Translations under genes and position numbers: made by a program
Assembly: GCF_001194135.2 (NCBI RefSeq)
Contig: NC_068999.1
Location: 24,556,346 to 24,595,932, forward strand
Direction: 5' to 3'
DNA: 39,587 nucleotides
Source of the DNA: Octopus bimaculoides
Lineage: Eukaryota
The notes under the pieces: generated by a model
Seen by the model: only the letters and a program-made list of their open reading frames with translations
Database searches by the model: none
What the model was told of the DNA's origin: nothing
In this document: positions 3,520 through 38,656 of the stretch, one piece after another
Layout of the letters: the number at the start of each line of letters is the position of its first letter
Numbering within the stretch: the stretch's first letter is position 1

Positions 3520-3900
3520 TTTATTTTTCACTTCAGTCATTGGACTGAGAACATGCTGGGGCACCTCCTTGAAGAATTTTGTACTACTTAGATACTGAGG
3601 TCCCGACGCATCTACGTAACCCTAACGCTAAAACTAATCCTAACGAGTGTACACTGTAAAAACATCGTTACGTAGATGCATCAAGACCTCTGTATATAAG
3701 TAGTGCGAAGAATTTTAGTCATGTCTCCGCTGAACCGTTAAGTTACGTGGACATACATAAACAAACCAACACCAGTTGTCAAGTGGTGGTTGCGCCGTGA
3801 TAAACAGACACAAAGACACACGCATAGTATATACATACACGACGGGATTCCATACAATTTCCGTCTATCAAATTTATTCAGGATGCCCAGTGGGACTGAA
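3520..3900 (-). mobile_element. SINE family B (tRNA head, CORE-like CCTTGGGCAAGT, internal microsatellite), interrupted by a MITE
   Basis: Matches the copies at 8921 and 33215. Confidence 0.75.
3581..3706. mobile_element. Mutator-like MITE nested in SINE B
   Basis: About 40-bp imperfect TIRs (GTACTACTTAGATACTGAGGTC...CATCTACGTAAC); perfect 10-bp TSD GAAGAATTTT at 3571-3580 and 3707-3716. Confidence 0.8.
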
Positions 3901-4875: not shown

Positions 4876-5227
4876 TTATTAGGGCACACAGAATAAGGTG
4901 GAGATGTGTAAAGAGAACAAACTGCTGCAAGGTAACCATGACTATAGTTCTTTATATGGAAAGCCTATGACATAGAGCAGATCACTGTCTTACTACTAGG
5001 GATGCTTTTGTCAATACTGCACATGAGAGTAAGATAACAACACATCAAAAGCCAGTTTATATGAGCCCCAGCAATATGGAAGGTGATTGCTGACTGCAAC
5101 ATCCATTTTATCTATCTTCCTCTTGACAATATACACAACTAGAATCTGCATGTACATGCATGATGCTTAGGAACTTTGTTATGTCTCCACTAGGCTTTCT
5201 CCAAATTATTGCAGATACCGGTGTCAC

Positions 5228-6613: not shown

Positions 6614-6845
6614 ATGGCAAAACGTACAGCAAATTCCAAAATTGAAGATGAACCAGCTGACTTAAAAAAATCAAAGAACGAAAGTCTGTCAGAGAAAATT
6701 CAAGAATCTCGCATAAAATGTGCAAAATCTGTTCAGGATTTTAAATTCAACAAAAAGCGAGTTCGTTTGTTGAATGAAGTGGAAGAATTCCTTGAAGGAT
6801 CTCAGGGCGTTCTTTATTGGATGGTCCGTGACCAAAGGGTGCAAG
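6614..6845 (+). CDS. phr: phr coding exon 1 (MAKRTANSK...[12 protein letters not shown])
   Basis: ATG at 6614; donor G|GTATGG at 6846, phase 1. Strong upstream acceptor-like sites (T-tract-CAG ending 6522, TTTAG ending 6585) suggest an upstream non-coding exon. Confidence 0.92.
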
Positions 6846-9084
6846 GTATGGTGATGCTTTATTGTGACTTCTATTAAATGTAACAGCTGTATCATTTACT
6901 TTTGTAATTTCTTTGCAATATTAATATTCATTTTAGGGCAGTGAGCTGGCAGAATCGTTAGCACGTCAGGTAAAATGCTTAGCAGCATTTTGTCTGTCTT
7001 TATGTTCTAAGTTCAAATTCTGCTGAGGTCGACTTTGTCTTGCATCCTTTCAGGGTCAATAAAATAAGTACCAGTTGATTACTGGAGTCAATGTAATTAG
7101 CCCCTCCTCTGAAATAGCTAGCATTGTGCCAAAATTTAAAACAAATACTAATATTCATTTATGTTAGAAATTGATAAAAATGTTTAAAACAAAATTTGAA
7201 AAACAAGAGAAAAGTGCAGAAGTCTCTCTTCATGCAACAGGCTCTCCTAGATAGTGTCTGAGGTAGTTGTTACCTTTCCAATAAGCTAAGTGAAAGATTT
7301 ATATTGGAGGGAAGCTCCCAGGAGCAGCCTCTCTCTATCTCTGTCATTATCATTTCATTACTTTTGGACTTTATCTTTATTTATAGGTAAATGACAAAAG
7401 GTCAATATAATTTCGTGTATAATCATTTTAGTTGGTATAGGGTATAATCCACTCCATCTTCAGAATTTGTAATTATTCTGGTGCAAATGGCCAATTAATA
7501 CAGCAAGCAATACATAACCTTAGAAACAATAAGAAACGATTGTTTCAATAACAATAGAGAGGCTATTTCCATGGAGTTGGACCATGTCCCATTGTAAGTG
7601 AAATATTTTCTTAATTTATTTTAAAAGTTTGTTGGAAAAACAGCTGAATATCGAAAGTGTTGGCTAGTTTATGCTTGAGGCTAGTTGAATAAATGTTTTG
7701 AGTGGACATTATAAGAGTACTTGTGTTAAAAGTTGATCAATCTCAACTGGAAAGAAATGGTGTCACCTAGTCATCTACCGATCCGGCAGACACTCTAGCC
7801 AAATCGATTACATCCTCGCCAGAAATAGAGAAAGAGGGAGGCTCCTAAATGCCAAAACCCTCCTTGGCGAAGAATGTACACCCCAACACAGATTAGTAGT
7901 CAGCGACTTTGAGANNNNNNNNNNNNNNNNNNNNNNNNNNNNNNNNNNNNNNNNNNNNNNNNNNNNNNNNNNNNNNNNNNNNNNNNNNNNNNNNNNNNNN
8001 NNNNNNNNNNNNNNACACACACATGATGGGTTTCTTTCAGTTTCTGTCTACCAAATCCACTCACTAGGCTTTCGTTGGCCTGAGGCTATAGTGGAAAACA
8101 CATGTCCAAGGTGCCATGCAGTGGGACTGGACCTGGAATCATGTTCTATTATAATAAAGTTTAACAAATTTAAACATTATCTAAGAACGATCTAGTTTGC
8201 TTCATTATAAACCAATCAATTAATATGAGACATGAACTGTTTTTGCAATATTTATTTATTTTAGATAACTGGGCTATGCTGTTTGCCCAAAGACTTGCTC
8301 TTAAAGAAAAGACATCCCTTCATGTATGCTTTTGTGTGGTGGTTCCATTTCTCGAGGCAACCAAACGACATTATGATTTTTTGTTGAATGGACTGAAGGA
8401 AGTTGAAAAGGTTTGTCTCAATTTTGACTTTTCTGAATTTTGTTTTCATTTAACTTAGAAGTTATTAGTATGAATTTCAATTTAAAACAAGTGTTCAATT
8501 AAATTGTTGCATTGGAAAGACAATATAGCAGTTAGATTCAACCCCATATTTGGTCACATGGAAGTCACAAGTTGATCATGTGCATAAACACAATTTCTCT
8601 CCAATCAACAACTTCTGTTCATATGATAGTCTGGCAGCATGACTAGGACTTTCTGTGAGCAAACCTTACAAATACAGTTCATTTTAGTGCAAAAAGGGCA
8701 GAGTGATTCAGTCTTTGGTGGAGTTTGCTCTTGATTCTAGCTGTTCTCACAGCTAGGCGTGATAGGTGAAGAAACACAGCAACATTTGCCTAAATGTTGA
8801 ATTTCTGACAAAGATTTCCTGCACTTGTAATATACGTTGTTTCATATAAAATTTACTCTTATATTGCATGAATACTTTCTGTGTTAATGTAGAAATAAAT
8901 AATGTTGAAAATTCCATATAGGCGCAGGAGTGGCTGTGTGGTAAGTAGCTTGCTTACCAACCACATGGTCCCGGGTTCATTCCCACTGCATGGCACCGTG
9001 GGCAAGTGTCTTCTACTATAGCCTCGGGCCAACCAAAGCCTTGTGAGTGGATTTGGTAGACGGAAACTGAAAGAAGCCCGTCGT

Positions 9085-9829: not shown

Positions 9830-12634
9830 CTCTCTCTCTCCCTCTCTCTCTTTCTCAAAGTGTAGGCATGATTGTACTGTTAAGAAGTTTGTTTTGCAAC
9901 CATGTGATTTCAAATTCAGTTTTACTGCATGGCACCTTGGGCATGTGTCCTCTACTATAGTCCTGGGCCAACCAAAGCCTTGTGGATGAAGGATAGATGG
10001 TAACAGAAAAGTATATACATGGTGAAGGCACATTGCCTAATAGTTAGTGTTGAATTCATGATTGCAAGATCATGATTTTGATTCCCAGGTTGGTAGCACA
10101 TTGTCTTCTTGAGCAAAACACTTCATTTCATTTTGCTCCAGTGACTTATGAATAGCTAACCCTGCAATAGACTACCATTTAGTTCAAGGGGTATATTAGC
10201 CTGCTCACATTTATGGTGCATTTTAGAAAAATAAGTAAAGAGCTGATATCCTCCACCATCATCACTACAAGAATTGGAGACTGTTTTAGCTGAAGAATGG
10301 ACAAAAATTCCTTTGGAAACAATTCAAACTTTGTACAAGTCCATACCTTGTAGAATTCAAGCTGTAATTACATCAAAAGCAGTCCTACCCCATATTAAAA
10401 TAAATTTGTTAGAAATTTTAAGGTGTTTCCATTATTTTGCCCAACCCCTGTAGATTACTTTACAAGATTGTGATAACACTCTATATATATCTCTTATTTT
10501 TCTCCTTTGACAGTTAATTAGTTTGATGGCTGTTAATAATTTTTGAAGTGTTGGCTCAGTATAAAATAAAATGTATGGTGTTTCTTTTTGTTCTTTCCTT
10601 AGGAATGCTGCAATTTGGATATTCAGTTCCATCTTTTGAAAGGAGACCCATCTTCTGAAGTATCCAGTTTGGTAAAAGAGTTGAATATCGGTGCTGTTGT
10701 CACAGATTTCAGCCCATTGAGACTTCCAAGAAAATGGTTGACTGATTTAACAGAGAATCTCCCTAAAAATGTTGGCTTGTGTCAGGTTAGACCTATTGTC
10801 CTCAAAATATTTGTAACAAATGCTTAATTAAATTAAAATAGAAATCATTTCTCTCATTACTGAACACTCATTTTATTATATTTCTTTTGTCTTTCAGGTG
10901 GACACACACAATATTGTACCATGTTGGATAACTTCTGAAAAGCAAGAATATGGTGCTAGAACTATTAGAAACAAAATCCACAGTCAAATGTGTAACTTTC
11001 TCACTGAATTCCCTCCTGTTATCAAGCATCCCCACAAAGCCAAAACTGAAGCCAAGGTAATCTTATATATCACTTTATTCTCTTTTCTATTACCTTTGCA
11101 TAGTTTATTATTATATCAGGATTGTTTAAATTATACATTTACTCTAATAAAGAAGTTTCTAGTAAGAAGGTAGAAAAAAAAAATGAAAAATGGTATTTTG
11201 TGCTAATTTGTTCTTTATTTTCATGCAGAATCTAAAAATACACAAACTTTGGATATATTTTGGGAAAGTTAATGATGATTCTTGACATACACATTTGTAT
11301 TGGAGTTCTTGATTAATTTAAATATGAAATTCTTACAGGAGCTGATTAGAGAAGAGTAGAGTGAATTGAAATAATTTTAGTAAACTATTAGAATTTATTT
11401 TATGTATACTCAATGCATAGAAGACAAACTTGGGTCATCACATTTTTAAAGATATCGTTATTAAGGTGTAATTTATTTTAAACCAAAATTATCATCATCA
11501 TTTAATGTCCACTTTCATGATATCATGGGTTAGATGGAATTTGTTGAGGTAAGTTTTTCTATTGCCAGATGTCCTTCCTATCGCTAATCCTCACCTGTTT
11601 CTAAGCAAGGTGATATTTCCCATGGTCAGACATGTTTTCTACAGAAGACTGGAAGCAAATACCATCATTGTATGAGAGTGATGCTTGTTTACAATCATCA
11701 TATGATGTCAAGACAAGAACATACGCACACAAACATATATATATATATATACATATATATATCATAAGGATGTGTTATAATACTATTCCACAGCCATACC
11801 AACAATCCAAGAATACTATTTCACATATACAAAAGCATCCATACCAACAATCCAACTTACCTCCATCGTCAGCTGCCCCACAGATATCATTATGGTTTCG
11901 ACATATCTTAATAATACTAAAACTCAAGGGATGTTTGCATGTACCCGAAACATCTCAGAAATATTTGTTTTCATACTTATCAAGGCAGAGCAGTACAAAT
12001 TTTTGTGACACCTAGACCTCTATTTATTAATGAAAATGATAAAAACACAATTTTTGTTTGTTATTTCTTGATGAAATAGAAAGCATGGCTTTCATGATGT
12101 CAACATACATACACGCTTACAGAACACACACACATATAATGAATGTCATGGCGTGTCAATCAACACAAACACACATCCGCTATCTGTGACTTATACACCT
12201 CATAGCCTTCGCGTTCTCTAATTAAAAAAAAAATGTTGACTTCTTGACGTACACAATATTGTAATCATTTTTAACTGAATATGATTTAAAAAATGTAATT
12301 AGTTTGTACAGTAAGTATTTATATTTTAGCTTTCTTTAAATAGACAATATTTTAATATTTTTAAAAATTATTTTCAAGTCGTTAATTTCTGTAAAAAAAT
12401 TTTTATTTATTTACTTTGTTTTAAAGTGAAAGATGTATGTACATCTGTGTATATGAAATGGATGTGTGTGTGTGAAAGAGAGAGAGAAAGAGTGAATGAA
12501 GGGGTGTGTTGTCATGTATACGTACAATACATCAATACATATGCGTGCATCTTTTTTGTATGTATGTGTGTGTGTGTGTGTGAGAGAGAGAGAGTGAGTG
12601 AATGAGTGTGTTCTCATGTATGTGTAAGTGGTAT

Positions 12635-14275: not shown

Positions 14276-16141
14276 CACATGTGCACCCCCCACCTTCTAT
14301 ATTTGTGTATATACAAGATGGTGCTTAAAAGTTCCTGGCTTTGAGTTAAAGAAAATATAAGAGAATCAATTATGATTTTATTCAGATTCACACACTTATT
14401 GCAGCGGTCCTTCAGTTTTTCTAAGCCCTGTAAAAAAGAACTTAGAAGGTTGGGTCACAAACCAGGCCATTTGTGACACCCTTAAAGCCAGGAACTTTTC
14501 AGCACCCCCTCATATATTTTCCATTTTTGTTTCAGAAGCCTACTACATCTCATTTCTCTCTAATTCAGAATTCTTACCACAATCACTTCATTTTGCAATC
14601 AGTATTGTCTGATGTAATTAGTTTTTCTGTACATTTAGAGCTGGAGCCAATATTACACATCATATTCAGTTTGTCTTCTTTATCTTAAACAAGCGAACTT
14701 GTTTTTTCAAACTGTCTCCTCTCTCTTTAGCCTACAAATTGGAATACAATTATTGGGAAGTCTGATATAGACGAGACTGTCAAACCAGTGGACTGGGCTA
14801 AACCAGGTACAGTTGCAGGTTATGCGACTCTGGAGAGTTTCTGCAATGAACGTCTAAAACATTTTGCCACAGAACGTAATGATCCTACCAAGAACAGTTT
14901 AAGTAATCTGTCTCCTTGGCTCCGATTTGGTAAGATTTATATTTAGTTATATTTGTAGAAATTTAACTGCAAATTTGTTTTTTCTTTTTTTGCTGTATCG
15001 TCATCATCACCATCACCACCATCCTCCTCCTCCAGGGTTGCAGTTGATCTGTCAATCAATGGAACAGCCATGCATGTGGCCGAGCACTCCACAGACACAA
15101 GTACTCTTAATGTAGTTTATTTGGGAGATTCAGTGACAAAGCTATCCCTTTGAAATACAGGTACTACTCGTTTTTGCCAAAGATACAATGTACTGCCAGG
15201 TATCGAACGCATGACCTTATGATCATAAGTTGAATACTCTAACTACTAAGCCACGCCTTCACACCAAGTATATATACGAACACAAACATTGACACATACA
15301 CACACACACGCACACACAATATATATTACATATATATATTACACAATATATATTATAAAGTATAATTATTTAGCTTCATTCTAGTTGTTAGAAATTATTC
15401 TTCCATTGCCATCATAATCATTGGGTAGACCATTTTTTCATGATGACATGATGTTGATCTAAACCCTATAGAGCCTGTTTGTGAGATTAATATCAGCACT
15501 TCATCTATTCTTCCTATGTCTTCCTTGGTCTCCTCCTTTTTTCTACCACGTGTTCCGTTCACCATCAACTCACCACACCTTTTCACCCTCACCCAGCACA
15601 TGTGTATATGCATTATGGATCTGCTGTCAGTTTATGATAATAAGTATTCAGTTGTTTGAGTAACCAAATGACCTGATCCTTAAATTAATATGTGAAGTGG
15701 CTGAGTATTTCACAAAAGCATGTACTGTTCTTGTAATTTTCAAGGAGAGTCAATTAGTATGACACAGTATGTGATAAAAGTGGAATTGTGAATTACAGGT
15801 ACAGTGGGCTTCTCCACAGTTTCTGTTTACCTATTTTTCACTCACGAGGCTTGGATTGAGTTTAAGCTGTGTTCAAAGACACTTGCCTAAGATGCCATGT
15901 GGTGAGATGGAACATGGGGCCTGGTGATCATGAAATGAATTTTTTAGCATTTGACCTTGTTGCATTCATTCTGCCATGCATAATGTAGATCAAATGTGTT
16001 CTGCTATAGCTCTGGGCCAACTAGAACCTTGTGAGAGAATTTGGTAGACTGAAACTGAAAGAAATTTATTGTACATATGTATTTGTGTACCCTTGTCTAG
16101 ACATCACATGATGATTGTAAATGAGTTTGTATATGTGTATG

Positions 16142-17095: not shown

Positions 17096-17154
17096 GTTAT
17101 TGTTNNNNNNNNNNTTATTGTTATTGTTATTGTTATTGTTGGTGTTGGTGTTGG

Positions 17155-18154: not shown

Positions 18155-21100
18155 TTTCAGGGGAATGAATTTCCTTAAAATAATAGGTATATATGTATGA
18201 TGAAACCATCCCTTCTAATTAAATTTATATATACATATATATACATACATATATATTTGTGTTTGTGTGTGTGTCTTTGTGTCTGTGTTTGACAACCAGT
18301 GTTGGCATGTTTACATCCCTGTGACTTAGTGATTCGGCAAAGGGACCGATAGAATAAGTACTAGGCTTAAACAAAAATAAATAAGTGTTGGTGTCGATTT
18401 GTTCAACTAAATCCTTCAAGGCAGTACCCCAGCATGGCCACAGTCAAATGACTGAAACAATAAGTGTATAAATTAGTGTGTTGACCTAAAGTACTTTATT
18501 GAGTAGCGTCCCTTTATTTTAAATTCAGTTGGAGCCATTCAGTAAAGAGAAATTGATAAAATATATATCTGGCATAAGTACAGGTATTTGGTGATCAAAA
18601 TAATCAATAAAAACACCTAAAAGTGTGCTCCAGCATGACCACATTCCAAAAAGTGGAACCAGTTAAAGAATATAGAAATTCTGTCCAAATATCAATGAAA
18701 TATATTCCAATTACCTTTATCCATCATTCTGTGAACACGTTTCATACCTCCCCTTTATTGTTTGTCTCCCTTAAATGTTTTTCTTGTTTCTTTATGTAAT
18801 AGGTCATATATCTCCACAAAGATGTATACTGGTTGTTAAGAAATTTCAGAAATCTTACAAAAATAGTGTTGATGCATTTGTTGAAGAGGCTGTTATACGC
18901 AGTGAGCTGGCCGATAATTACTGCTATTACCAGAAGGACTACGACAATATAAATGGTAGGATTTGGTTTTTTTTTTTTTATCATTGATTCTGATGGAGTT
19001 CGCATAATGATCTTTAATCTATAAAACCTATCTCTTTGTTTGTATCTCAGGAGCTTATGAATGGGCTCGGAATAGCTTGAAGCAGCATGCTAAGGACAAA
19101 CGAGAATACGTTTACTCAAGGAAAGTGTTTGAAGAAGGCAAGACTCATGATCAACTCTGGAATGCTGCCCAAGTAAGAATATGTTTATGTTTAATATTTT
19201 TTAGTAAAATATTAGGCTGCGAGCTGGCAGAATTGTCAGTATGCTGGGCAAAATGCTCAGCAGCATTTTGTCCGTTTCTACATTCTGAGCTCAAATGTTA
19301 TTGGGGTCGACTTTGCCTTTCATGTTTTTGAAGCCAATAGAATAAGTATCAGTTGAGCATCATGGTCAATTTAATTGACCTAACCAAACCCTGAAATTGC
19401 TGGCCTTGTGCCAAAATTTTAAGACAATATTTTTTAGTAAATCTCCTTTTCTAAAGTAGATCATTTCATGTTTCTTTCCTTTTTTAATATTATGTGGATT
19501 TGTCTTTATGTTCTGAGTTGAAATTCCATCCTTTTGGGGTCGATAAATTAAGTACCATTTGCATACTGGAGTCGATCTGATTGACTGGCCCCCCCCCTCC
19601 CCCAAAATGTTGGGCCTTGTGCCTAGAGTAGAATTGGTCGTGCATATAATATTGGTTCCAGGTCAGAGGTGCTATTTTGCAAATTGTTTTGAGAAGCTAA
19701 TCTGTGAATGTTTTATGTTATTTAAAACTATTTCTTTATTTCCAGATACAACTTGTCAAAGAAGGTAAAATGCATGGCTTTCTAAGGATGTATTGGGCGA
19801 AAAAAATTCTAGAATGGTCAACTACTCCTTCTGAAGCACTGGAAATTGCCATATACTTAAATGACCGATATTCTTTAGATGGAATTGATTCCAATGGATA
19901 TGTTGGTATGTATTTATCTTTTAAAATATCTTCAGCTTTACAAAGGAGAAAAATGGTGAAATGTAATACACCTGTCATATCAGGAATACAGGAATTTCCT
20001 ACTGATAATATGTTCGGAACTTAAACACATATTGAGCTTGAATACTGAAAACCTATTTTTTGTATCAGTTTTTATTGGCTGGTTTATGACATAAGGTGGC
20101 AATATATTAAAAGCACAAAATAGAGGAAGTAGTCAAAATAGCTCATTTATTAAGGCAGTGTGTTGACAAAATTGTTAGACTGCCAGATAAAATGCCTTAT
20201 GGCATTTGTTCTGGCTCTTTGTATTCTGGGTTCAAATACCACCCCTTCTGGGACTCATAAAATAAAGTAACAATCAAGTATTTTAGTTGATTTTAATCAA
20301 CTGTTGATTTCTACCATTGTGCAATAGTCTAGCACTGCACAATACATTGCTGTTGCTGTTGCTACTTCTTCCTCTTTCTCCTATCGTTCACTATTCCATG
20401 CATGCATGGTCTGACATAATTTGTTGGGGGTGATTTTGTACAACCAGAAGCCCTTCCTGTTGCATTCCCATGGCCAGACATATTTTATATGGAAGACTAG
20501 AAACAAGCGACATGCTTATTTACAACCATCATGATGTCAAAAGATGGGTACGTATGCACACACAGACACACATATACATGTGATAAGCTTCTTCCAGTTT
20601 TCAACTATCAAATTCACACAAAGCTTTGATCAGCCCATTTCTGTAGTAGAAGACACTTGCTCAAGGTGCTGTATAGTGGATCACCACATGGTGAGGAAGC
20701 AAGCTTCTTAACTGCATAGTCCCACCTGCACTTCCCACGCTGTAGGACCAAAATCCCTACACAACCATAGGGTCCCCAGGACAGTTGAAGTGTCACACTG
20801 GTTGATGTTATCTTATTGTAACATTCCCATATTACTGGAACTGTAACACACACAGTCACACAATAGACACACCCACATGCTGATACATTCAGATCAGATC
20901 AAAAGGTTTTTACTGTTGATAATAATGGTTTCCAAATTTTGGCACAAGACCAGCAATTTTAGGGAGAGTGGGTAAGTTGATAACATTAACCCCAGTGTTC
21001 AACTGGTACTTATTTTATCGGTCCCAAAAGGATGAAAGGCAAAGTCGACCTCAGTAGAATTTGAACTCAGAATGTAAAGATAGACAAAATGCTGCTAAGC

Positions 21101-24100
21101 TTTTTGCCCGGCATGCTAACGACTCTACCAGCTAAACTTGTATTGTTTCATAATGACTGCATCAGAAACTGCAACTCTCGGGTCTGACTCTGGTTACAGG
21201 ACAAACAAATGCAATACTTATCTACAAGGGTAGATAAACTCAACAAAGAGTCAACAGCAAGCTATCAAACCAGGGGCCCCATTTAGGGCTTTTGAGTCTA
21301 GTGTTACTGACTCTTGGGACACACTGGTGTGAGAAGTCCCTTGATAAGTGTGAGGGCTATCCATGGTAGCTTGAATCAGTTGTGGGTTTTCCTTTTTCGT
21401 TTTATGGCATTGTTGAAAACAACAAATACATGAAATTCCTAATTAAATACTTGATTGTTTTTTAGACTCATTATTCACAATTGCTGTCTCTTTGTAGGCT
21501 GTATGTGGTCTGTTTGTGCTATTCATGATCGGGCCTGGGGGGAAAGAAAAATCATTGGCAAAATTCGGATCATGACATATGAAGGCTGCAAGCGGAAGTT
21601 CGATGTCGATGCCTACATTACCAAATATTGTTCCAAGAATTCTAAAAAAATATAAAGCCCAGCTCCCTTTCACTTCCAGTTTTGTTCAGAATGTTTTTCA
21701 GGAATAAATTTTTCTTAGTTGCTGCTTTTTTGGTTTTATGTTTGTCAGTCAGCTTTTATAAGAGTCCTTTTGAAATACATAATTGGCTAGTCCTGTATAT
21801 TCATTTGAAGTTGATTGTTATTAAAACTACTTTTCGTGCATGATAAATAACATCCTTTCTTTTGGTCTTTGTTTTTTTCTGTAATATTCTATTACAATGG
21901 CTTAAAGCTGTAAATAATTGTAGTATTATGTATGAAGAAAAGTGTTTTACATGTTCAGGAAAACCAAGAAAACTGAGATTTTAAGCTGAGTGAGATTGGA
22001 AGTTGTGAGGTTTTTTTTAAGTTCCCTAAGTAATTGCCAATAAGTTAAGTGAAATAACTTTAATAATCCTCCTCCTCTTCTTCCATCCATCCATTTTCCA
22101 TACTGGCATGGTTTGGACTGTTTAACAGGAGCTGGTAAGGCCAGGAGTTGCACCAGGCTCCATTGTCTGTTCTGGAATGATTTCTATGGCTGGATGCCCT
22201 TTCGAATGCCAACCACTTCACAGAGTGTACTGGATGCTTTTTATGTGGCACCAGCACCAAGACATAAATAATAAAAGAAAAAGAAATGGCAGTCTTATTT
22301 TTTTTCCTGATCTTTCTTGTGATAGCTGCTCTCAATACATGGATTTTTGAAGTTGTATGACTGCTGCCAGATCTTCAAACAGCTCTGTAATAATTTAAAC
22401 TATATATGTATATAATGTCAGAGGAAAGAATTACAATACAGATTCTTCAAGCCAAGCCAAGTGGTAGGAGACCAGAGGGTAAACCAAGGACAAACAAGAT
22501 AGTTAGATAATATCCATAGTCTGAGTTGGTCATGCTTGGGAATCCAGCCGGAAAGTCTAATAACAGTTGCTTCTGATAGGACCCTATGGAGGAGGTGTCT
22601 AAGGACTCTATCCCCACAATCATCTTGGGAGTAGTAGATGGAGAAGATGAATGGATGAATATGTGTGTGTGGATGTATAACTTGACAGATTTAGAATACA
22701 AGTTTGACTGTGGTTAAGAATTTCACTGTGCAGCTTCATGGTTCTAGATTTGTTTCTATTATTCTTTGAGCAAGTGTCTTCCAGTTTAACCTCTGAATGA
22801 CCAATACTTTGGAAGTGAAATTTAGTAGATTTGGTAGTGGGGGGNNNNNNNNNNNNNNGGGGGGGGGGGGGGTAGTATAACTTGTCTTTTCCATATGTAC
22901 ATACTTACATAGACAGACAGGCAGGTTTAATAACATCATAATTAACTGCTCCAAGGGCAAAGGTGATGCACTAGAGAGAGAGGAAACAGCAGAGATATTA
23001 AACTATTGGTTTAGTTTATGAGAGTTTGTGAAAGAGTTATAGTGTAATGAACTGGGATGAGAATAACATAGTTACAATGCAGTTTGGTTTTGTTCCATGA
23101 AGATATATTGCTGATGAGATTTTCATTTTTGACAAGGCTGCCAGGTAAGTATCTAGCTAGGGGCAAGCATCTGTACTAGGTTTGTTGATCTAGAAAAGAC
23201 TGTCAACAGGGTTCCATCCTCTGTGAAGAAGCTTGGGGTTAGTGTAATAGTTTATGAGAGCTATATAAGCCATATATGAAGGTACAGTCAGTAAGGTGAG
23301 AGTGAGTTATGGGTATAACAATGAATTCTGTGTAAAGTAGGGATACATGAAGGCTTAGTCTTCAGCCTGCTCCTGTTCATTATTATTCTTTTAGCTATAA
23401 CAAAGGAGTTTAAGATTGACTGCCCATGGAAACTTCTTTGTGTAGACAACCTTTGTCTTATAGTCAGATCAGTTGTAGAATTAGAAAAGAAATTCCAGGT
23501 GTGGAAACAAAACCTTGGAGTGGAAGGCTTAACAAAAGCTAAATTATTAGTAACAAGGAGAGAAAATAGGACTCCAGTACCATCAGAGAAATGATCGTCT
23601 GTTGTATGCAGAAAAGGAATAGGTAAGAATTCCATAAGGTATACTCAGTGTGGATTATGGACACATGAGGTGTAGTGAGAATAATAAAAGCATGAAGACA
23701 GGGAAGGAAGACTTTATATGCACAGAAGCTATAAGTACTTAGGCACATGTGAAATAAACACTTTCCATTGACTCTGTCAAAGTATTGATAGTTTCTGTTA
23801 TCTTGGGGACCTAATTAGCTGTTGGGGTGGGCTTTCAGAAAGCATGGTATCCAGAGTAAGAGCTGGTTGAAGATAGTTCTGAGAACTATTATCTCTGCTT
23901 GTAAGAAAGGATAAAGGGCAGATTGTATATGAAGTGCATTGCTGCATGGGCCCTGAATGAAAATTTGATAAGACTAGAAAGAGATGAAGTGAACATGGCC
24001 CATAAGATGTTTAACATTAGTGTACATTAATAATGGAGCACAAATAAGCTGATAGAATAACTGGACATGAGAGGAATCATGTAGCATACAAGAGAGAAGA

Positions 24101-27100
24101 CTGGTTGGTTTGGGTGTGTGCTTTGTGTGGAGGAGGACAGCTCTATGAAGAAGTGCTGCATGTTCAAAGTATTTCATTTGAACATTCAAAGTATGCTGCA
24201 GAAGAAGAAGACTTGGCACAAATATGTATATCATACTGCTGTGAAATCAGTTGCATTGTTATCTAACAATTCATCAGAGATTGCCATACAGTAGGGACTC
24301 TCAAACTTAGGTCCATGTCCCCCTAAGGGTACAAACCTCACACACCCCTAAAATCACTGGAATTTTAAGTAATTACAACCAAGATGCAAACTGGTCAATA
24401 AAGGACCAGAAACAACATAATCAATTGTTTGCTCCTCCAAAATTTCTGGCTTTGTCCTAGTAAGAAATTAATTTCGTTTGATTTAATGATGCAGTTTCAA
24501 AGAGGCTGTAAACTCTCATCTGGATTGAAACAGCAAAAGGCTCTCCACACATTTTCTAGACACACAGTTTGTCATGGTGGAAAGCAACAGCTTCCAGTTA
24601 GATGGCTTTAATGCAGGAATCTCAAACATTTCCTGCTTATGTACCCCTTTGTCATGTCCAGTACAACTGGCAGACCCTGTATAAAGTATAAAGTATATAG
24701 GGAAAATGGTTGGATAACATACAACAGATAAGACAGGTATAATTTATTAATTTAATTTGAAAAGTTCAAATCCCACCAAATTCCACCATGCAACTGATTT
24801 CACAGCAGTAAGGTCCTCAAATTCATGTTTCACGATTGCATTCCTGCTTCAGTGGAACTGTTAGCAGACAGCCCAGTTTAGTATGTATGTACTTGCAACT
24901 ATATTTAAGTACTTTTAGAAACTTAAAAATGAGCTTGGTACATAATCTGTCATGCTTTTAGAAGACTTCAGTATCCACTATGAGGACAAAACAACAGGCA
25001 TTGCGTCCCTCACCCCTAAAATTAACCAATTGCTTTGAGTTACAGTAAAGCAATAAGAGGAGAATTTTCTTGATGTTATTCTGATCAATTTAGGGTTAGG
25101 GTTAGGGTAGCTGCTACAAGTCTTGAACACCTGGGTAGGACTGGTAAAACTGAATGTTCCAATGTACATATTTGGTGCTACAAAAGAGCAAAACACTCAG
25201 TTCGTGTAATTTAAACTCTATGCAAAGTAATCATTCGAAGCAAAGTCATCAATGCCAAAAGAAACAACCAATAAAACTTGATTTGGTGAAAGATTCAGCA
25301 GAGCTTCCAGAAAAGTGTCATTTCTTCTGTCAATTTAAGATGAGTAAGAATAATAGTGTAGAGAATTAATGAAAGGCACAGTTACTGATTTTAGAGGGGG
25401 ATAAAAAGCACTGACATAGGTGTCAGTATGGTTGTGTGGTAAGAAGTTTGCTTCCCAACCTCATGGTTCTGGGTTCAACCCCACTATGTGGCACCTTGGG
25501 CAAGTGACTTTTATTATAACCCCAGGCTGACCAAAGCTTTGTGAGTGGATGTGGTAGATGGAAACTGAAAGAAGTCTGTCATTGTAAATATATATATGTG
25601 TGTGTCTTTCTGTATGTGTTTGTCCCCCCACCAGCACTTGACAACCAGTGTTGGGGTGTTTGGCCCTGTAATGTAGCAGTTAGGGAAAAAAGACTGATAG
25701 AATAAGTACCAGGTTTTACAAAAAACAATAAGTTCAACTAAAATTCTTCAAGGTGATGCCCCAGCATGGGTGTAGTCTAATGATTGAAACAAGATATTGA
25801 AGAAAGACCAAAACAATGTTGGACTATAATAAACTGTCACCTTCATATGGCTATTATCAAATGCAATGCATCTGCCTGCTCAACAACAGTAGAAGACAAA
25901 GTCAACATTTTCTACAAGAGTTTTGCTGTGAGCATTCTTAGCAAGGCAACAACAAGAGTTTTTAGCTAAAAGCCAACCCACTACATGTTTTATTTGTTGA
26001 CTGGAGAAGACTTTTGACAGAAAACCCCTCTCTAGCTGGGTGGTCACTAAGAGAACTATGTGTAGATGGATAGCATGTGGGAGTCATGTACAGTGGGGCT
26101 CTCAGCAAAATGAAAATTAGCAATGTATTTGGTGATAAATTTTGCAGGTAGATATGTGTCCATAAGGGCTCTGTTCTCAGCCTCCTGTTGTGGCTCGGAA
26201 ATGATAGCTGCCCAGGTGACTTTCATTTGTTGAGGGCACAAAACTTTCTCTTGTATTCTGTCCTACCAGCTTGTGTGTAGGTACTGAAACAGCAGAATTA
26301 CTTGGACCCTTGCTTAAGGACTTTTAAAGCCCCTTGTTATTTCTTCCATGTCCTGGTGGGCCTATTAAACATTTTTTAAAAACTTTTTATTATTATTATT
26401 ATTTTTTGTGATAGGAGGTGGAATTTGAACTCAAAACATACAGAACTGAAACTATTGCAAATTATTTCATCTAATGCTGTAACATAATATAAGCATTATC
26501 CAGTTGACTGATGCTTTATTTATCAGCTCTGAAAAGATGAAAAGCAAGGTTGATCTATGTGGGATTTGAATTCTGAGTGCAGAGGACCAGAACAAATAAA
26601 TACTTCTAGCAATTCTATTCAATATGCTAATAAATTCCTTAATTTGTCATCACAAACACGTGCGTGTGTATGTATGTGTAACTTGTTAACTTCTGAAGTG
26701 AGCTCTTCATATCAAGTGTTTCGTTTTAGGGCAGTAATATACTGTATAGTTTACTTTTATTTGTCTTGCAGTTTTTCTTGTATTTTGTTGCATAACATTG
26801 GCTTTTGTAGGAACAGCTATATGAACTAATAGACACTTTATATACAGCTCTCAACTCAACCCTGAAGCAGGACCTTAACACTGTAACTTGTTGTCAGTTA
26901 GGTAAAGCAGTGCAAACAGAACTCATGATTGTGATCATCAGTTAATTTTCTTAGCCCTATGGATATTGCACCTTATTTGACAAATACCACTTGTGTGGGT
27001 TTCAGCATTCATCATCATCATCATCACCATCATCATCATCATTTAATGTCCGTTTTCCTTGTTGGCATGGGTTGGACGGTTCAACAGGAGCTGACAAACT

Positions 27101-28161
27101 GGAGAGCTACATCAGATTCCATTTGTCTGTTTTGACGTGGTTTCTGTGGCTGGATACCCTTCCTAATGCGAACCACTTCACAGAGTGTGCTGGGTGCCTT
27201 GCATGTGTTGCTGGCACAGGTGCTTTTTACCTGGCACCGGCATCAACATGATCACCAAGTAACATACAAGACAAAGCCCTCTTGGCTGAGAGATGGAATG
27301 GAACCGAAGGAAGTGGTTGTGTGCCAGTCGAGAGGTTAGAGTATGAAAGAGGGACAGGGATAGTTGTCCGACTGTAGAGGGAATACTTGACCACCCCAGT
27401 AGGACAAGGAAGGAGATGAAAATATTCTTTTCTGCTCTAGCCACAAGGCCCGAAATTTTTTGGGGAGGGGGCCCAGTTGATTAGATTGACCCCAGTATGC
27501 AACTGGTACTTAATTTATTGACCCCGGCTAACATTTCTGCCAGCTCACTGCCTTAGGAGATGGAAATATTGTAGCTCCATTTCTACTTTAACATTTACCA
27601 TTACCTTCTTTTTTTTTTTTGATGAAATCTCTTTATCATAGTAATTTAGATATTGTTTACATTTAGTATTTGTTTACCAATAGGATGACAAGCTGGCAGA
27701 ACCTATAGCACACCAGGCAAAATGCTTAATGGCATTTCATCCATCTCTACATTCTTAGTTCAAATTTCACCTGGGTCGACTTTGTCTTTCATTCTTTCGG
27801 GGTCAATAAAATAAGGACCAGTTGAGCACCTGGGATTGATCTAATTGACTTACCCACTCCCCTGGAATTGCTGGCCTTGTGCTAAAGTGTGAAACCAATA
27901 TTTGTTTAGTAATAATAAAAGTTGCTAAAAAATTGACATGTTTGGTTTTGTTTGTTGTTCAACATTTTACATTTCAACACTGATCTTTACTTTGGCAACA
28001 TCTTTTCTATATTTCTAGGTTGTATGTGGTCAGTTTGTGGAATCCATGACATGGGTTGGGCCGAACGACAGATTTTTGGCAAAATTCGTTACATGAACTT
28101 CAATGGATGTAAACGTAAATTTGATGTCAACAGATTTATAATGCGTTATAAGAGCAAGTAA
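6614..28161 (+). CDS. phr: Class II CPD DNA photolyase, spliced: join(6614-6845,8265-8410,10603-10785,10898-11056,14731-14929,18803-18955,19051-19172,19746-19905, then either 21498-21655 [503 aa] or 28019-28161 [498 aa])
   Basis: All introns are GT-AG and phases join into one open frame. Class II motifs present: YWMxRDQRVQDNWA, TDFSPLR, VDxHNIVP, RNDP..LSNLSPW, ELADN, HDx[50 protein letters not shown]. Confidence 0.96.
6936..7150 (+). mobile_element. SINE family A (phr intron 1)
   Basis: A-box-like TGGCAGAATCGTTAG, B-box-like GTTCAAATTC, shared 3' end GTGCCAAAATTT. Confidence 0.85.
7764..7914 (+). mobile_element. RTE-clade LINE fragment (C-terminus of AP endonuclease), cut by an assembly gap
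   Basis: Open translation [20 protein letters not shown]...[16 protein letters not shown]; gap at 7915-8014. Confidence 0.8.
8265..8410 (+). CDS. phr: phr coding exon 2 (DNWAMLFAQ...GLKEVEK)
   Basis: Acceptor TTTTAG ending 8264 completes GAT (Asp of QDNWA); donor AG|GTTTGT at 8411, phase 0. Confidence 0.95.
8921..9310 (+). mobile_element. SINE family B, full-length, young-looking
   Basis: Complete head, CORE-like block, internal (TA)n and 3' tail; CpGs largely intact. Confidence 0.9.
9860..10020 (-). mobile_element. SINE family B 5' half, next to a (CA)n(CT)n microsatellite
   Basis: Reverse-complement head: GGCACCTTGGGCATGTGTCC...CCAAAGCCTTGTG. Confidence 0.7.
10035..10200 (+). mobile_element. 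tRNA/CORE-type SINE, family D
   Basis: GATTCCCAGG...TTCTTGAGCAAAACACTTCATTTCA...GCTCCAGT; related minus-strand copies at about 15030-15260 and 15660-15805. Confidence 0.6.
10245..10450 (+). mobile_element. Tc1-like transposon 3' fragment
   Basis: Translates [35 protein letters not shown]; ends in TIR ...TTTTGCCCAACCCCTG followed by TA (10451-10452). Confidence 0.8.
10603..10785 (+). CDS. phr: phr coding exon 3 ([12 protein letters not shown]...TDFSPLR...VGLCQ)
   Basis: Polypyrimidine tract plus TAG ending 10602; 61 codons; donor CAG|GTTAGA. Confidence 0.95.
10898..11056 (+). CDS. phr: phr coding exon 4 ([10 protein letters not shown]...EYGARTIR...EAK)
   Basis: Acceptor TTTCAG ending 10897 after a 112-nt intron; 53 codons; donor AAG|GTAATC. 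Confidence 0.95.
11487..11715 (-). mobile_element. Family C retroposon (variant) with (CAT)n tail
   Basis: CATCATCATTTAATGTCCACTTTCATG...CCTTCCTATCGCTAATCC. Confidence 0.65.
12791..12873. repeat. 21-bp minisatellite, 4 copies (AGTTCTGAGAGTCAAAGTGAC)
   Basis: Directly visible head-to-tail units with no spacers. Confidence 0.95.
12939..13057. repeat. Inverted repeat: 38-bp arms with a 43-nt spacer
   Basis: AAAGATTTGGCTGTTATTTCTTGCATGCCCTGCTACCA versus TGGTAGCAGGGCATGCAAGAAATAGCCACCAAATCTTT. Confidence 0.9.
13395..13575 (-). mobile_element. SINE family B 5' half
   Basis: TATCAAATCCACTCACAAGG...AGAAGACACTTGCC...GGACTGAACC. Confidence 0.75.
13713..13977 (-). mobile_element. SINE family A plus partial second copy, between 13-bp direct repeats
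   Basis: TCCTATCAATATT at 13703-13715 and 13978-13990 (probable TSD). Confidence 0.7.
14314..14512. mobile_element. Mariner-derived MITE
   Basis: About 30-bp TIRs (GGTGCTxAAAAGTTCCTGGCTTT) flanked by TA at both ends. Confidence 0.85.
14731..14929 (+). CDS. phr: phr coding exon 5 (PTNWN...[19 protein letters not shown])
   Basis: Acceptor CTCTTTAG ending 14730; donor G|GTAAGA, phase 1. Missed by the ORF track (no start codon). Confidence 0.95.
16425..17402 (+). mobile_element. Head-to-tail array of four family A SINEs separated by (TTA)n/(TTG)n tails
   Basis: Copies start at about 16425, 16634, 16836 and 17186; each ends in a GTGCC... tail running into ATT repeats. Confidence 0.85.
17946..18465 (+). 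mobile_element. SINE family B with long internal (TA)n; a partial copy precedes it at about 17850-17940
   Basis: Head GGCACAGGCGTTGCTGTGTG..., tail GACTGAAACAA. Confidence 0.85.
18803..18955 (+). CDS. phr: phr coding exon 6 (GHISPQR...[13 protein letters not shown]...DNIN-G)
   Basis: Acceptor AATAG ending 18802; donor G|GTAGGA, phase 1. Confidence 0.95.
19051..19172 (+). CDS. phr: phr coding exon 7 (GAYEWA...[10 protein letters not shown])
   Basis: Acceptor TCTCAG ending 19050 after a 95-nt intron; donor CAA|GTAAGA, phase 0. Confidence 0.95.
19215..19640 (+). mobile_element. SINE family A, full copy plus partial copy, filling most of phr intron 7
   Basis: GAGCTGGCAGAATTGTCAG...; second fragment GTTCTGAGTTGAAATTCC...GTGCCTAGAGTAGAA. 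Confidence 0.8.
19746..19905 (+). CDS. phr: phr coding exon 8 ([24 protein letters not shown]...[11 protein letters not shown])
   Basis: Acceptor TTTCCAG ending 19745; FAD-binding core motif; donor G|GTATGT, phase 1. Confidence 0.96.
20575..20720 (-). mobile_element. SINE family B 5' half
   Basis: GTAGAAGACACTTGCTCAAGG...CCACATGG...AAGCTTCTTAAC. Confidence 0.7.
20921..21133 (-). mobile_element. SINE family A upstream of exon 9a
   Basis: Near-complete reverse-complement copy. Confidence 0.85.
21498..21655 (+). CDS. phr: phr proximal alternative terminal exon 9a ([52 protein letters not shown])
   Basis: Acceptor CTCTTTGTAG ending 21497, phase-compatible with exon 8; open to TAA at 21653-21655; AATAAA at 21703 and ATTAAA at 21820 downstream. 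Confidence 0.88.
21703..21825 (+). terminator. Candidate proximal poly(A) signals for the exon 9a isoform
   Basis: AATAAA at 21703-21708 and ATTAAA at 21820-21825, the latter followed by a T/GT-rich tract. Confidence 0.5.
22965..24240 (+). mobile_element. Heavily decayed RTE-clade LINE (RT domain and C-terminus)
   Basis: Fragments resembling MQFGFVP, DLEKxxxRVP, VGxHxGxVxSxLLF, CPWKLLxVDxL, [22 protein letters not shown]; many stops and frameshifts. Confidence 0.8.
25420..25795 (+). mobile_element. SINE family B (CpG-eroded)
   Basis: Full-length alignment to the other copies; no CG seen. Confidence 0.85.
25840..25960 (+). mobile_element. Possible LINE AP-endonuclease fragment
   Basis: [23 protein letters not shown] resembles the II..YAPT...E..K..FY motif. 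Confidence 0.4.
27005..27245 (-). mobile_element. Family C retroposon with (CAT)n tail
   Basis: CATCATCATTTAATGTCCGTTTTCC...CCTTCCTAATGCGAACCAC. Confidence 0.75.
27682..27902 (+). mobile_element. SINE family A immediately upstream of exon 9b; a deleted minus-strand copy lies at about 27443-27548
   Basis: AAGCTGGCAGAACC...GAAACCAATA. Confidence 0.85.
28019..28161 (+). CDS. phr: phr distal alternative terminal exon 9b ([47 protein letters not shown])
   Basis: Acceptor ATTTCTAG ending 28018, same phase as 9a; branch-like CTGAT about 35 nt upstream; typical animal class II C-terminus. Confidence 0.9.
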
Positions 28162-28319: not shown

Positions 28320-28534
28320 CCCTTTTGCTACCAACCTACCTGAAACTACCCTTGGTTCTCTCACACAAACTGTCTCAAAGTAACTTAAATGCAAATCTTC
28401 CATCAAAATTTCATGTTAATTTGTTCCAAACATCATCGTAATAATGACAAAGTTATTTTACTACATTCTTCATTATTTTCAAAATTAATAGAAACAAGGA
28501 ACTTTATTTCAGCAGAAATATGGTAATAAAAGAG
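28320..28534. mobile_element. piggyBac-like MITE in the 3' UTR of the 9b isoform
   Basis: TTAA-CCCTTTTGCTACC ... GGTAATAAAAGAG-TTAA (TTAA at 28316 and 28535; imperfect TIR). Confidence 0.7.
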
Positions 28535-34760: not shown

Positions 34761-35901
34761 TCAATCTACATCACAAGAAATCGTTTCTGAAAACTTTGAT
34801 TTTTCGTCAATGCAAGAACTTTTTCTGTTAGTTAACAGAGGAATGGGATTATTTTCCGAGATGAAATCATTTTCCGGCGGCATTATGGTTGTATCAAGGA
34901 GTTTAGTATAGTTATCTGTATCACAATTAGTCGTAGTGCAGTCTACATCACTATCGGAGGAATGAAATCCATTGTTAATATTAGTATTAGTAATTCTGCT
35001 GTGGGCAAGCAGGGGCACTGGTTCATTTATTTTCAGTCTATCATGAATTCGTTTATGTCTCTCTAGATTACTCTTGTGGCTAGTTGCATAATCACAATGT
35101 GGACAGTTATAGTCCTTTTGTCCATTATGGACAGACAGGTGACGTCTTAGCAAAGCTTTCCGACAGAATCGTCGCCCACAGAACGGACAGGAATAACCGT
35201 TGTGATGAAATATTGTGATGTGTTCCCTCAGAGACGCTTTTGTTGAGAAAGTGACACCACAGCATTCCAGGACTTTATCGCAGGCTTGATGCATTGTAGA
35301 AATATGTCTTTTTAGATTGTTGCGTCTGTCTGTGACATAACGACAGTGTGAGCAAGGAAATAACTTACCACGAAATGTGTTACACACGAGCATAGCAAGT
35401 TCTAAATAGTTTCTGTTCATTAAAGGGGCTTTGTATTTGAAATAAGATAAGTCAGTTGGCATACTGGCCTGCTTGAATTGTTGGTGATACTCTACTAGGC
35501 TAAGTGGCCGTGTATTGTTTGCAAGAGAAGTTGGTGGAGGATACAGTGAATATTGCAACCAAGCAGCAGGTAAACCCAGAGCAGTCGGCAAAGATGCTGC
35601 TGGAGATATTATTGGAATGCCGCTATGAAGGTAGTGACGGCTACTAGAACTACCAAATGGAGTAAAAGAACTGCTTGGGCTTTTCGTGTTCCCTTTTTCT
35701 GAGTTTGAGCTGGGAGATTGTAAATAGAATCGCTCTGTTCGATCTATCGATGCGGGTGAATGAAGAGAAAGGCGATCTGCTCGCTCCATTGAACCAGGAG
35801 AGTATAGAGACAGGCGTTCTTTTTGGTCTGTTGATCCAGGCGAGGAGTTACTTCTTTCTTGAGACAAACGAGGAAGAATATTTTCTGCCCGAGAAGAACC
35901 A
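34761..35901 (-). CDS. C2H2 zinc-finger protein (4 fingers), large terminal coding exon; upstream exon(s) not securely identified
   Basis: Long open frame; fingers at about 35360-35043 (FPCSHCRYVTDRRNNLKRHISTMH, atypical ECCGVTF...H...H, YSCPFCGRRF...HLSVH, YNCPHCDYATSHKSNLERHKRIH). The track start is TTG, not ATG. A strong acceptor (TTCTTTCTTTTTGCAG) opens the exon at 35901 (phase 2), adding GSSRAENILPR. Confidence 0.9.
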
Positions 35902-37915: not shown

Positions 37916-38656
37916 NNNNNNNNNNNNNNNNNNNNNNNNNNNNNNNNNNNNNNNNNNNNNNNNNNNNNNNNNNNNNNNNNNNNNNNNNNNNNNNNNNNNN
38001 NNNNNNNNNNNNNNNNNNNNNNNNNNNNNNNNNNNNNNNNNNNNNNNNNNNNNNNNNNNNNNNNNNNNNNNNNNNNNNNNNNNNNNNNNNNNNNNNNNNN
38101 NNNNNNNNNNNNNNNNNNNNNNNNNNNNNNNNNNNNNNNNNNNNNNNNNNNNNNNNNNNNNNNNNNNNNNNNNNNNNNNNNNNNNNNNNNNNNNNNNNNN
38201 NNNNNNNNNNNNNNNNNNNNNNNNNNNNNNNNNNNNNNNNNNNNNNNNNNNNNNNNNNNNNNNNNNNNNNNNNNNNNNNNNNNNNNNNNNNNNNNNNNNN
38301 NNNNNNNNNNNNNNNNNNNNNNNNNNNNNNNNNNNNNNNNNNNNNNNNNNNNNNNNNNNNNNNNNNNNNNNNNNNNNNNNNNNNNNNNNNNNNNNNNNNN
38401 NNNNNNNNNNNNNNNNNNNNNNNNNNNNNNNNNNNNNNNNNNNNNNNNNNNNNNNNNNNNNNNNNNNNNNNNNNNNNNNNNNNNNNNNNNNNNNNNNNNN
38501 NNNNNNNNNNNNNNNNNNNNNNNNNNNNNNNNNNNNNNNNNNNNNNNNNNNNNNNNNNNNNNNNNNNNNNNNNNNNNNNNNNNNNNNNNNNNNNNNNNNN
38601 NNNNNNNNNNNNNNNNNNNNNNNNNNNNNNNNNNNNNNNNNNNNNNNNNNNNNNNN

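Follow-up and report, generated by a model that had tools for sequence, protein, structure and literature searches.

Two ancient, probably alternative, last exons in the class II photolyase gene of Octopus bimaculoides

The window analysed here is a 39,587-nt stretch of the Octopus bimaculoides chromosome CM046619.1 (assembly GCA_001194135.2, at ~24.55 Mb), and it carries a nine-exon class II cyclobutane pyrimidine dimer (CPD) photolyase gene whose terminal coding exon occurs in two versions, here called 9a and 9b. The gene lies on the + strand and every one of its introns is GT-AG. Exon 1 (6614..6845) opens with the ATG at 6614 and ends in phase 1; it is followed by exons 2 (8265..8410, with AG/GT boundaries), 3 (10603..10785), 4 (10898..11056), 5 (14731..14929), 6 (18803..18955) and 7 (19051..19172, ending ...HDQLWNAAQ), and then by exon 8 (19746..19905, 160 nt), the last shared exon, which ends in phase 1 at a GT donor (G/gtatgt). 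The proximal last exon, 9a (21498..21655), has the acceptor ctctttgtag/GC and contributes 52 residues before a TAA stop; the distal one, 9b (28019..28161), has the acceptor atatttctag/GT and contributes 47 residues, also ending at TAA. Both counts include a glycine whose codon is split, its first base coming from exon 8 and the remainder from either 9a or 9b. Poly(A)-type hexamers follow 9a in the region 21703..21825 (AATAAA at 21703 and ATTAAA at 21820), and the first AATAAA past the 9b stop lies at 28525..28530. The segment 21656..28018, which is the 3′ region of 9a and the intron of the 9b isoform, is repeat-rich and holds an assembly gap (22845-22858) that is discussed below.

A first-pass annotation of this DNA, made from the sequence alone, had described a phase 1 end of exon 8 and, beyond it, two homologous exons about 6.5 kb apart, each with an acceptor, an open frame, a stop and downstream hexamers. 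All of these features were reproduced, and the measured spacing is 6521 nt. Its residue counts are also exact: of 47 residues, 31 are identical in 9a and 9b; degenerate codons specify 27 of these, and in 15 cases the codons differ. Nucleotide identity between the two exons is 64.5%, and they are readily told apart by the motifs HDRAWGER...IGKIRIMT (9a) and HDMGWAER...FGKIRYMN (9b).

Exon 9b is not a second gene. When the whole protein was compared with the window by tblastn, copies of exons 1-8 were found nowhere else in it; no other exon of a photolyase is present, and the gene that follows encodes zinc fingers and runs convergently. The range recorded by NCBI for the photolyase gene, 21,548 bp, corresponds exactly to 6614-28161 and so ends at the 9b stop. 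Exons 1-8 joined to 9a encode 503 amino acids and are equal to XP_052830650.1 (“deoxyribodipyrimidine photo-lyase isoform X1”), and exons 1-8 joined to 9b encode 498 amino acids and are equal to XP_052830651.1 (isoform X2); the earlier proposal of two products from one gene agrees with this annotation. The two proteins are identical over residues 1-451, which include the antenna domain, the FAD site and the Trp chain, and differ only in their last 47-52 residues.

Both isoforms belong to the class II photolyases. Against the TIGR00591 (phr2) profile, whose cut-off is 550.05 bits, X1 (with 9a) scores 699 bits and X2 (with 9b) scores 710.4 bits, in each case over positions 2-453 of 453. The antenna domain PF00875 is matched at residues 66-226 of both isoforms (E = 4e-28), and the segment made of exon 8 and 9b matches solved class II structures with E values of 1e-42 to 1e-47. 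Residues are numbered below as in MmCPDII, that is, by the 2xry chain numbering minus 18, an offset that was verified on five named residues. By alignment to 2xry, exon 8 contains the equivalents of W381 (RMYW), W388 (LEW) and N403 (LND, the FAD-N5 asparagine), and ungapped extension of the same numbering would place W360 in exon 7 (QLWNAAQ). Exon 9 contains W421 (CMW), D428-R429-A430-W431 (HDxxW) and R441 (KIR). Thus, the first-pass assignment of the Trp chain to the shared exons holds, with W360 resting on the extended numbering, and alignment to MmCPDII (PMC6126647) bears out its structural mapping of the CMW tryptophan, the bubble-intruding HDxxW loop and the KIR arginine; the DNA-backbone role that it gives to KRK is a putative one. 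In the structural work, W421 stacks on the CPD, the residues that intrude into the bubble are R429, W431 and R441, conservation is strict at D428 and R441, and 429 can also be Q, M or H (PMC6126647); the bubble-intruding region is reported to be displaced as the product is released. W421, D428, W431 and R441 are kept in both 9a and 9b, and position 429 is R in 9a and either M (octopods) or Q (the decapod contig described below) in 9b.

The two exon types differ in how closely they follow the rest of the family. At 26 sites that are conserved in at least 95% of 118 other animal enzymes, 9a departs at 5-7 and 9b at 1-3. All coleoid 9a exons carry Q429R, G430A, A432G, Y442I and N444T, and all but that of Argonauta carry F437I as well. 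These changes lie directly beside the retained residues, and it is mainly at such positions bordering the plug that the two versions of the segment differ. In 342 non-cephalopod sequences gathered for comparison, only Y and F occur at position 442; 335 have F at 437, and 341 have N or S at 444. The motif HDRAWG is known among them as a minority state, for example in M. mazei.

The first-pass annotation had suggested searching other cephalopods and molluscs to date the duplication, and this was informative: both exons occur in octopods and a decapodiform, but only one last exon in oyster and chiton. O. sinensis (L009), O. vulgaris (L010) and Argonauta hians (L008) all have exon 8, 9a and 9b in this order with frames, AG acceptors and stops intact, and so does an ENA genomic contig from a cuttlefish relative (L011), where exon 8 is at 586-744, 9a at 3705-3862 and 9b at 4906-5057. 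Together with O. bimaculoides these make up the five assemblies compared here. The decapodiform contig was reached through P0342, the one useful match in a profile search with five exon-9 peptides. The same search returned no decapod 9b open reading frame, which is expected of an exon with no in-frame ATG before its YMNF motif. In oyster (L013) and chiton (L012) a phase-1 intron lies at the same position and is followed by one intact last exon, and a second copy is absent from the last intron and from the 10 kb downstream.

Over 46 compared residues, 9a exons share 31-42 with one another, 9b exons share 34-39, and 9a and 9b share 25-30; the outgroup exons are closer to 9b than to 9a. These two orthology groups, and the nearness of 9b to the outgroups, place one duplication before the octopod-decapodiform split, and 9b is, to judge from its sequence, the ancestral type and 9a the derived type. 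Octopods and decapodiforms separated more than 200 million years ago. Between O. bimaculoides and either Argonauta or the decapod contig the exons alone align and the flanks do not. Cephalopod photolyase orthologues as a whole are 55-68% identical to those of other animals.

Codon analysis by the Nei-Gojobori method, giving the proportions of synonymous (pS) and non-synonymous (pN) differences, indicates purifying selection on 9a and 9b alike. Between O. bimaculoides and Argonauta, 9a has pS 0.94 and pN 0.11 (Fisher p = 3e-16) and 9b has pS 0.59 and pN 0.09 (Fisher p = 3e-7). Exons 1-8 of the same pair have pS 0.78 and pN 0.076 (pN/pS 0.10), and between O. bimaculoides and O. sinensis they have pS 0.061 and pN 0.011 (pN/pS 0.18). 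When decapod and octopod sequences are compared, pN/pS is 0.13-0.21 for both 9a and 9b. Thus, both alternative exons are about as constrained as the shared exons. The earlier conclusion, an old duplication with both copies under protein-level constraint, is upheld by their intactness in all five assemblies, by pN/pS of 0.1-0.2 and by synonymous sites near saturation. At the shortest distance examined, O. bimaculoides versus O. sinensis, 9a shows 4 non-synonymous changes (K435N, I436V, E446Q and A456S) and 1 synonymous change, and 9b shows 0 non-synonymous and 3 synonymous changes.

Both mRNAs in Octopus are known from annotation. In addition to the O. bimaculoides pair, which has been in the public annotation from the first release for that species onward, O. 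sinensis has XP_029648244.1 and XP_029648245.1, O. vulgaris has CAI9736512 with 9a and CAI9736511 and CAI9736510 with 9b, and Argonauta hians has one annotated 9b form. RefSeq Gnomon is not known to issue additional isoforms without transcript evidence for them. Alternative forms entered the O. vulgaris annotation through PASA updates that drew on RNA-seq and Iso-Seq assemblies. We also note a third O. vulgaris form (P0244, 542 amino acids) with a different N-terminus, which reads sequence homologous to the window just upstream of 6614 (...FVPFCRSIAKLGRLIPDFSLVGD...) and may represent an alternative start or a retained 5′ segment.

In cuttlefish, use of 9a is seen directly in transcripts. RNA-seq contigs of ~2 kb from several runs encode P0123, a 500-amino-acid photolyase that ends in a 9a-type segment; one of these runs (SRR25114244) is a Sepia esculenta larval library. 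Aligned to the decapod genomic contig, one such Sepia esculenta contig passes through exon 8, jumps to 9a and stays collinear for ~80 nt past the stop, which establishes this junction in a cuttlefish and shows that 9a is used there as a terminal exon. All full-length members of the P0123 cluster are 9a-type. A protein search with a short query (exon 8 plus 9a) returned only fragments of at most 184 amino acids and no cephalopod; it also missed the identical RefSeq protein, and therefore says nothing about Octopus transcripts. Three other entries (P0253, P0254 and P0257, on Logan contigs of ~1-3.4 kb) contain 64-amino-acid open reading frames that end ...SPWLHFGK and not ...HFGQVSAQR. With this ending, the reading frame continues beyond exon 5 into the next intron, which makes them either cuttlefish photolyase transcripts that are unspliced or retain the intron, or fragments of genomic DNA.

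The first-pass annotation knew of no description of this arrangement for a photolyase. For the literature this stands, as none of the papers searched discusses the isoforms, and our search located no report of duplicated last exons for the C-terminal catalytic segment of any photolyase or cryptochrome; it does not stand for the databases, where the isoforms are already annotated. A large survey of the photolyase/cryptochrome family deliberately excluded isoforms. The arrangement, a class II photolyase with alternative last exons that arose by exon duplication, is thus publicly annotated and apparently undescribed in the papers searched.

We consider it likely that the terminal exon was tandemly duplicated in an ancestor of the coleoids and that both copies were retained as alternative last exons, so that the gene yields two class II photolyases built on one core. 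The duplicated unit would have been the terminal coding exon itself, and the single phase-1 donor of exon 8 would serve both copies. Where 9a is used, with cleavage and polyadenylation just downstream, the 503-residue enzyme would be made; where 9a is skipped and exon 8 is spliced to the distal 9b, the 498-residue enzyme would result. The choice between them, for which the first-pass annotation proposed possible control by tissue or light, would then be set by competition between splicing plus polyadenylation at 9a and splicing to 9b. We predict that each isoform is an active CPD photolyase and that the two are set apart by the way in which the plug engages unpaired bases and is later displaced. 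The expected difference in behaviour would be one of lesion-context preference, binding or release.

Several points weigh against this interpretation. In O. bimaculoides itself the evidence for both junctions is the RefSeq model, and in cuttlefish a 9b-type transcript was not found in the P0123 cluster, although absence there is weak evidence. The HDRAWG motif occurs in ordinary class II enzymes such as that of M. mazei, so that part of the 9a signature need not alter function. Lastly, the 4:1 ratio of non-synonymous to synonymous changes that separates 9a of O. bimaculoides from that of O. sinensis is a slight sign, on tiny numbers, that some sites of this exon are less constrained; the variable 9a sites may have undergone recent relaxation or adaptive change, between which counts this small do not decide.

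The main rival explanation keeps the same gene architecture and supposes that selection maintains a difference in regulation or targeting, through the 3′ untranslated regions (UTRs) and the basic C-terminal tails, which would act on mRNA stability, translation, or nuclear versus mitochondrial location. A plant class II photolyase does carry nuclear and mitochondrial signals in its C-terminal region, 9a and 9b bring unrelated 3′ UTRs, and their tails differ beyond ...KY/RY. However, there is little conservation at the very ends of the tails among exons of one type (one 9a tail is YSKAKKAK), the conserved type-specific differences sit near W431 and R441 in the folded part of the protein, and the octopod 3′ UTRs do not align with Argonauta or the decapod contig. 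We regard this explanation as a real but clearly minor contender.

A second rival would have the 9a isoform altered in, or deprived of, photolyase function, acting on another substrate, as a light-dependent regulator or as a competitor for lesions, and would leave classical repair to 9b. The departures of 9a at 5-7 of the 26 conserved sites, the Ile where the 342 other sequences have Tyr or Phe, and the lack of (6-4) photolyase and CRY-DASH in cephalopods are the observations that speak for it. Yet W421, D428, W431, R441 and the entire shared catalytic core are intact in the 9a isoform, which still scores 699 bits on TIGR00591, and the cuttlefish larval transcriptomes carry the 9a form, as would be expected of a working enzyme. 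We therefore think it improbable.

It is still less probable that one exon is an unused relic and the second isoform an annotation artefact. Such a reading could draw on the fact that junction support in O. bimaculoides comes from annotation models, and on the missing cuttlefish 9b-type transcript, but a pseudo-exon would hardly keep its frame, acceptor and stop in five assemblies at saturated synonymous divergence with pN/pS of 0.1-0.2 per exon, and the O. vulgaris alternative forms were built on transcript evidence. Finally, an assembly error in which 9b was brought in from a paralogue that had been collapsed or wrongly joined, perhaps by way of the gap that does lie between 9a and 9b, is extremely improbable, given that the arrangement recurs in independent assemblies of five taxa, that the window has no other photolyase exons, and that the gap closes cleanly in relatives. 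On these comparative data a pseudo-exon, a mis-assembled or separate paralogue, a second gene and a gap artefact were all rejected.

The gap itself is a run of N (22845-22858) in a poly-G tract, in non-coding DNA ~1.19 kb downstream of the 9a stop. Its flanks abut in the ungapped assemblies of O. sinensis (32373/32366) and O. vulgaris (49838/49835), and the entire 9a-9b interval is collinear with O. sinensis. Thus, nothing of note is lost in the gap, which affects neither a reading frame nor the linkage of 9a to 9b, and these assemblies give no sign of the mis-assembly that the first-pass annotation had named as a way to overturn its claim. Other gaps are at 7915-8014 (intron 1), 17105-17114 (intron 5) and 37916-38656 (beyond the zinc-finger gene), and these touch no coding exon, since the assembled coding sequence equals the RefSeq proteins.

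The flanks of 9a and 9b had been said to show no similarity to each other. This is correct in that there is no duplicated flank, and needs amending in that the flanks have copies of dispersed repeats in common, which are non-collinear and partly inverted; a recent segmental duplication, considered because of these matches, was rejected for the same reason. One such match is an inverted pair, 20921-21133 and 27691-27902 (78.5% over 214 nt), of which the first copy precedes 9a by 365-575 nt and the second precedes 9b by 117-328 nt. By pairing in the pre-mRNA, these copies could cause 9a to be looped out. O. sinensis and O. vulgaris have them too, whereas Argonauta and the decapod contig do not, so that they are probably no more than a dispersed repeat. 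Between 9a and 9b, O. sinensis and O. vulgaris have ~3 kb more DNA than O. bimaculoides (a distance of 9.3-9.4 versus 6.4 kb), and O. sinensis has a block of ~3.7 kb (L009 27238-30973 versus window 21926-22073) directly after the 9a 3′ region.

The chiton Liolophura sinensis has, at 21253-21893 of L012, a tandem array of ~7 copies of an 85-bp unit (91-97% matches), each comprising the last exon 8 codons, the GT donor and the start of the last intron. The array thereby offers several tandem candidate donors, its copies being degenerate and stop-containing, and it indicates that the intron that hosts the cephalopod exon duplication has also been prone to duplication in a chiton. Downstream of the photolyase gene in the window, the open reading frame at 34761-35867 on the minus strand encodes a 368-amino-acid protein with C2H2 zinc fingers and is convergent to photolyase; a zinc-finger gene is at the matching downstream position in O. 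sinensis, O. vulgaris and Argonauta.

According to the literature cephalopods lack (6-4) photolyase and CRY-DASH and have no photolyase other than this one; a division of labour between 9a and 9b isoforms is attractive on that account, if unproven. A bolder form of the idea, to which we give only a low probability, is that coleoids gained a second, neofunctionalised photolyase by duplicating only the exon for the lesion-stacking Trp and the plug in their sole photolyase gene. If this were true, the 9a isoform, with R429, A430, G432, I437, I442 and T444, would differ in its range of lesion or sequence contexts, in its use of single- versus double-stranded substrate, in release kinetics or in compartment, and the gene would amount to a “module swap” carried out by nature, from which the plug's control of photolyase specificity could be read. 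The bubble-intruding region is thought to hold the complex with the flipped-out lesion together, and its share in specificity has hardly been tested so far. Cephalopods offer two natural versions of the plug segment on one invariant photochemical core, both under selection since before the octopod-decapodiform split, and a comparison of the 9a and 9b isoforms would directly test the role of the plug and its neighbours. The gene is also a clean case of duplication and divergence at the level of the exon, not the gene, in a DNA-repair enzyme, and a reminder that family surveys that discard isoforms can overlook functional diversity.

Alternative isoforms with proposed different roles have been described within the same superfamily for CRY4a and CRY4b of the European robin, which belong to a different subfamily and differ in exon usage from the cephalopod photolyase. 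To our knowledge, the robin isoforms do not involve a duplicated terminal exon that replaces a DNA-contacting module. Rice OsPHR reaches several compartments as a single protein, “not a splice variant”, with nuclear and mitochondrial signals at its C-terminus; it has one C-terminus, whereas the cephalopod gene encodes two. Both octopus isoforms match, over its full length, the family profile to which MmCPDII (2xry, 2xrz, 5zcw) and rice PHR (3umv) belong, and octopus 9a and MmCPDII both have HDRAWGER. Unlike these known class II enzymes, which are described as single products, the cephalopod gene offers two alpha17-loop-alpha18/bubble-intruding segments, and Ile442, Thr444 and the usual Ile437 of cephalopod 9a are absent, or nearly so, from the 342 other sequences. 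In its architecture, the closest likeness is to a well-known feature of animal genes: exons duplicated in tandem that come to be used as alternatives, among them alternative last exons, where splicing and polyadenylation compete to set the choice. Like these, the octopus exons stand in tandem in the same phase, share a donor and have their own stops and poly(A) signals, and their protein sequences have been conserved while their introns and UTRs have diverged.

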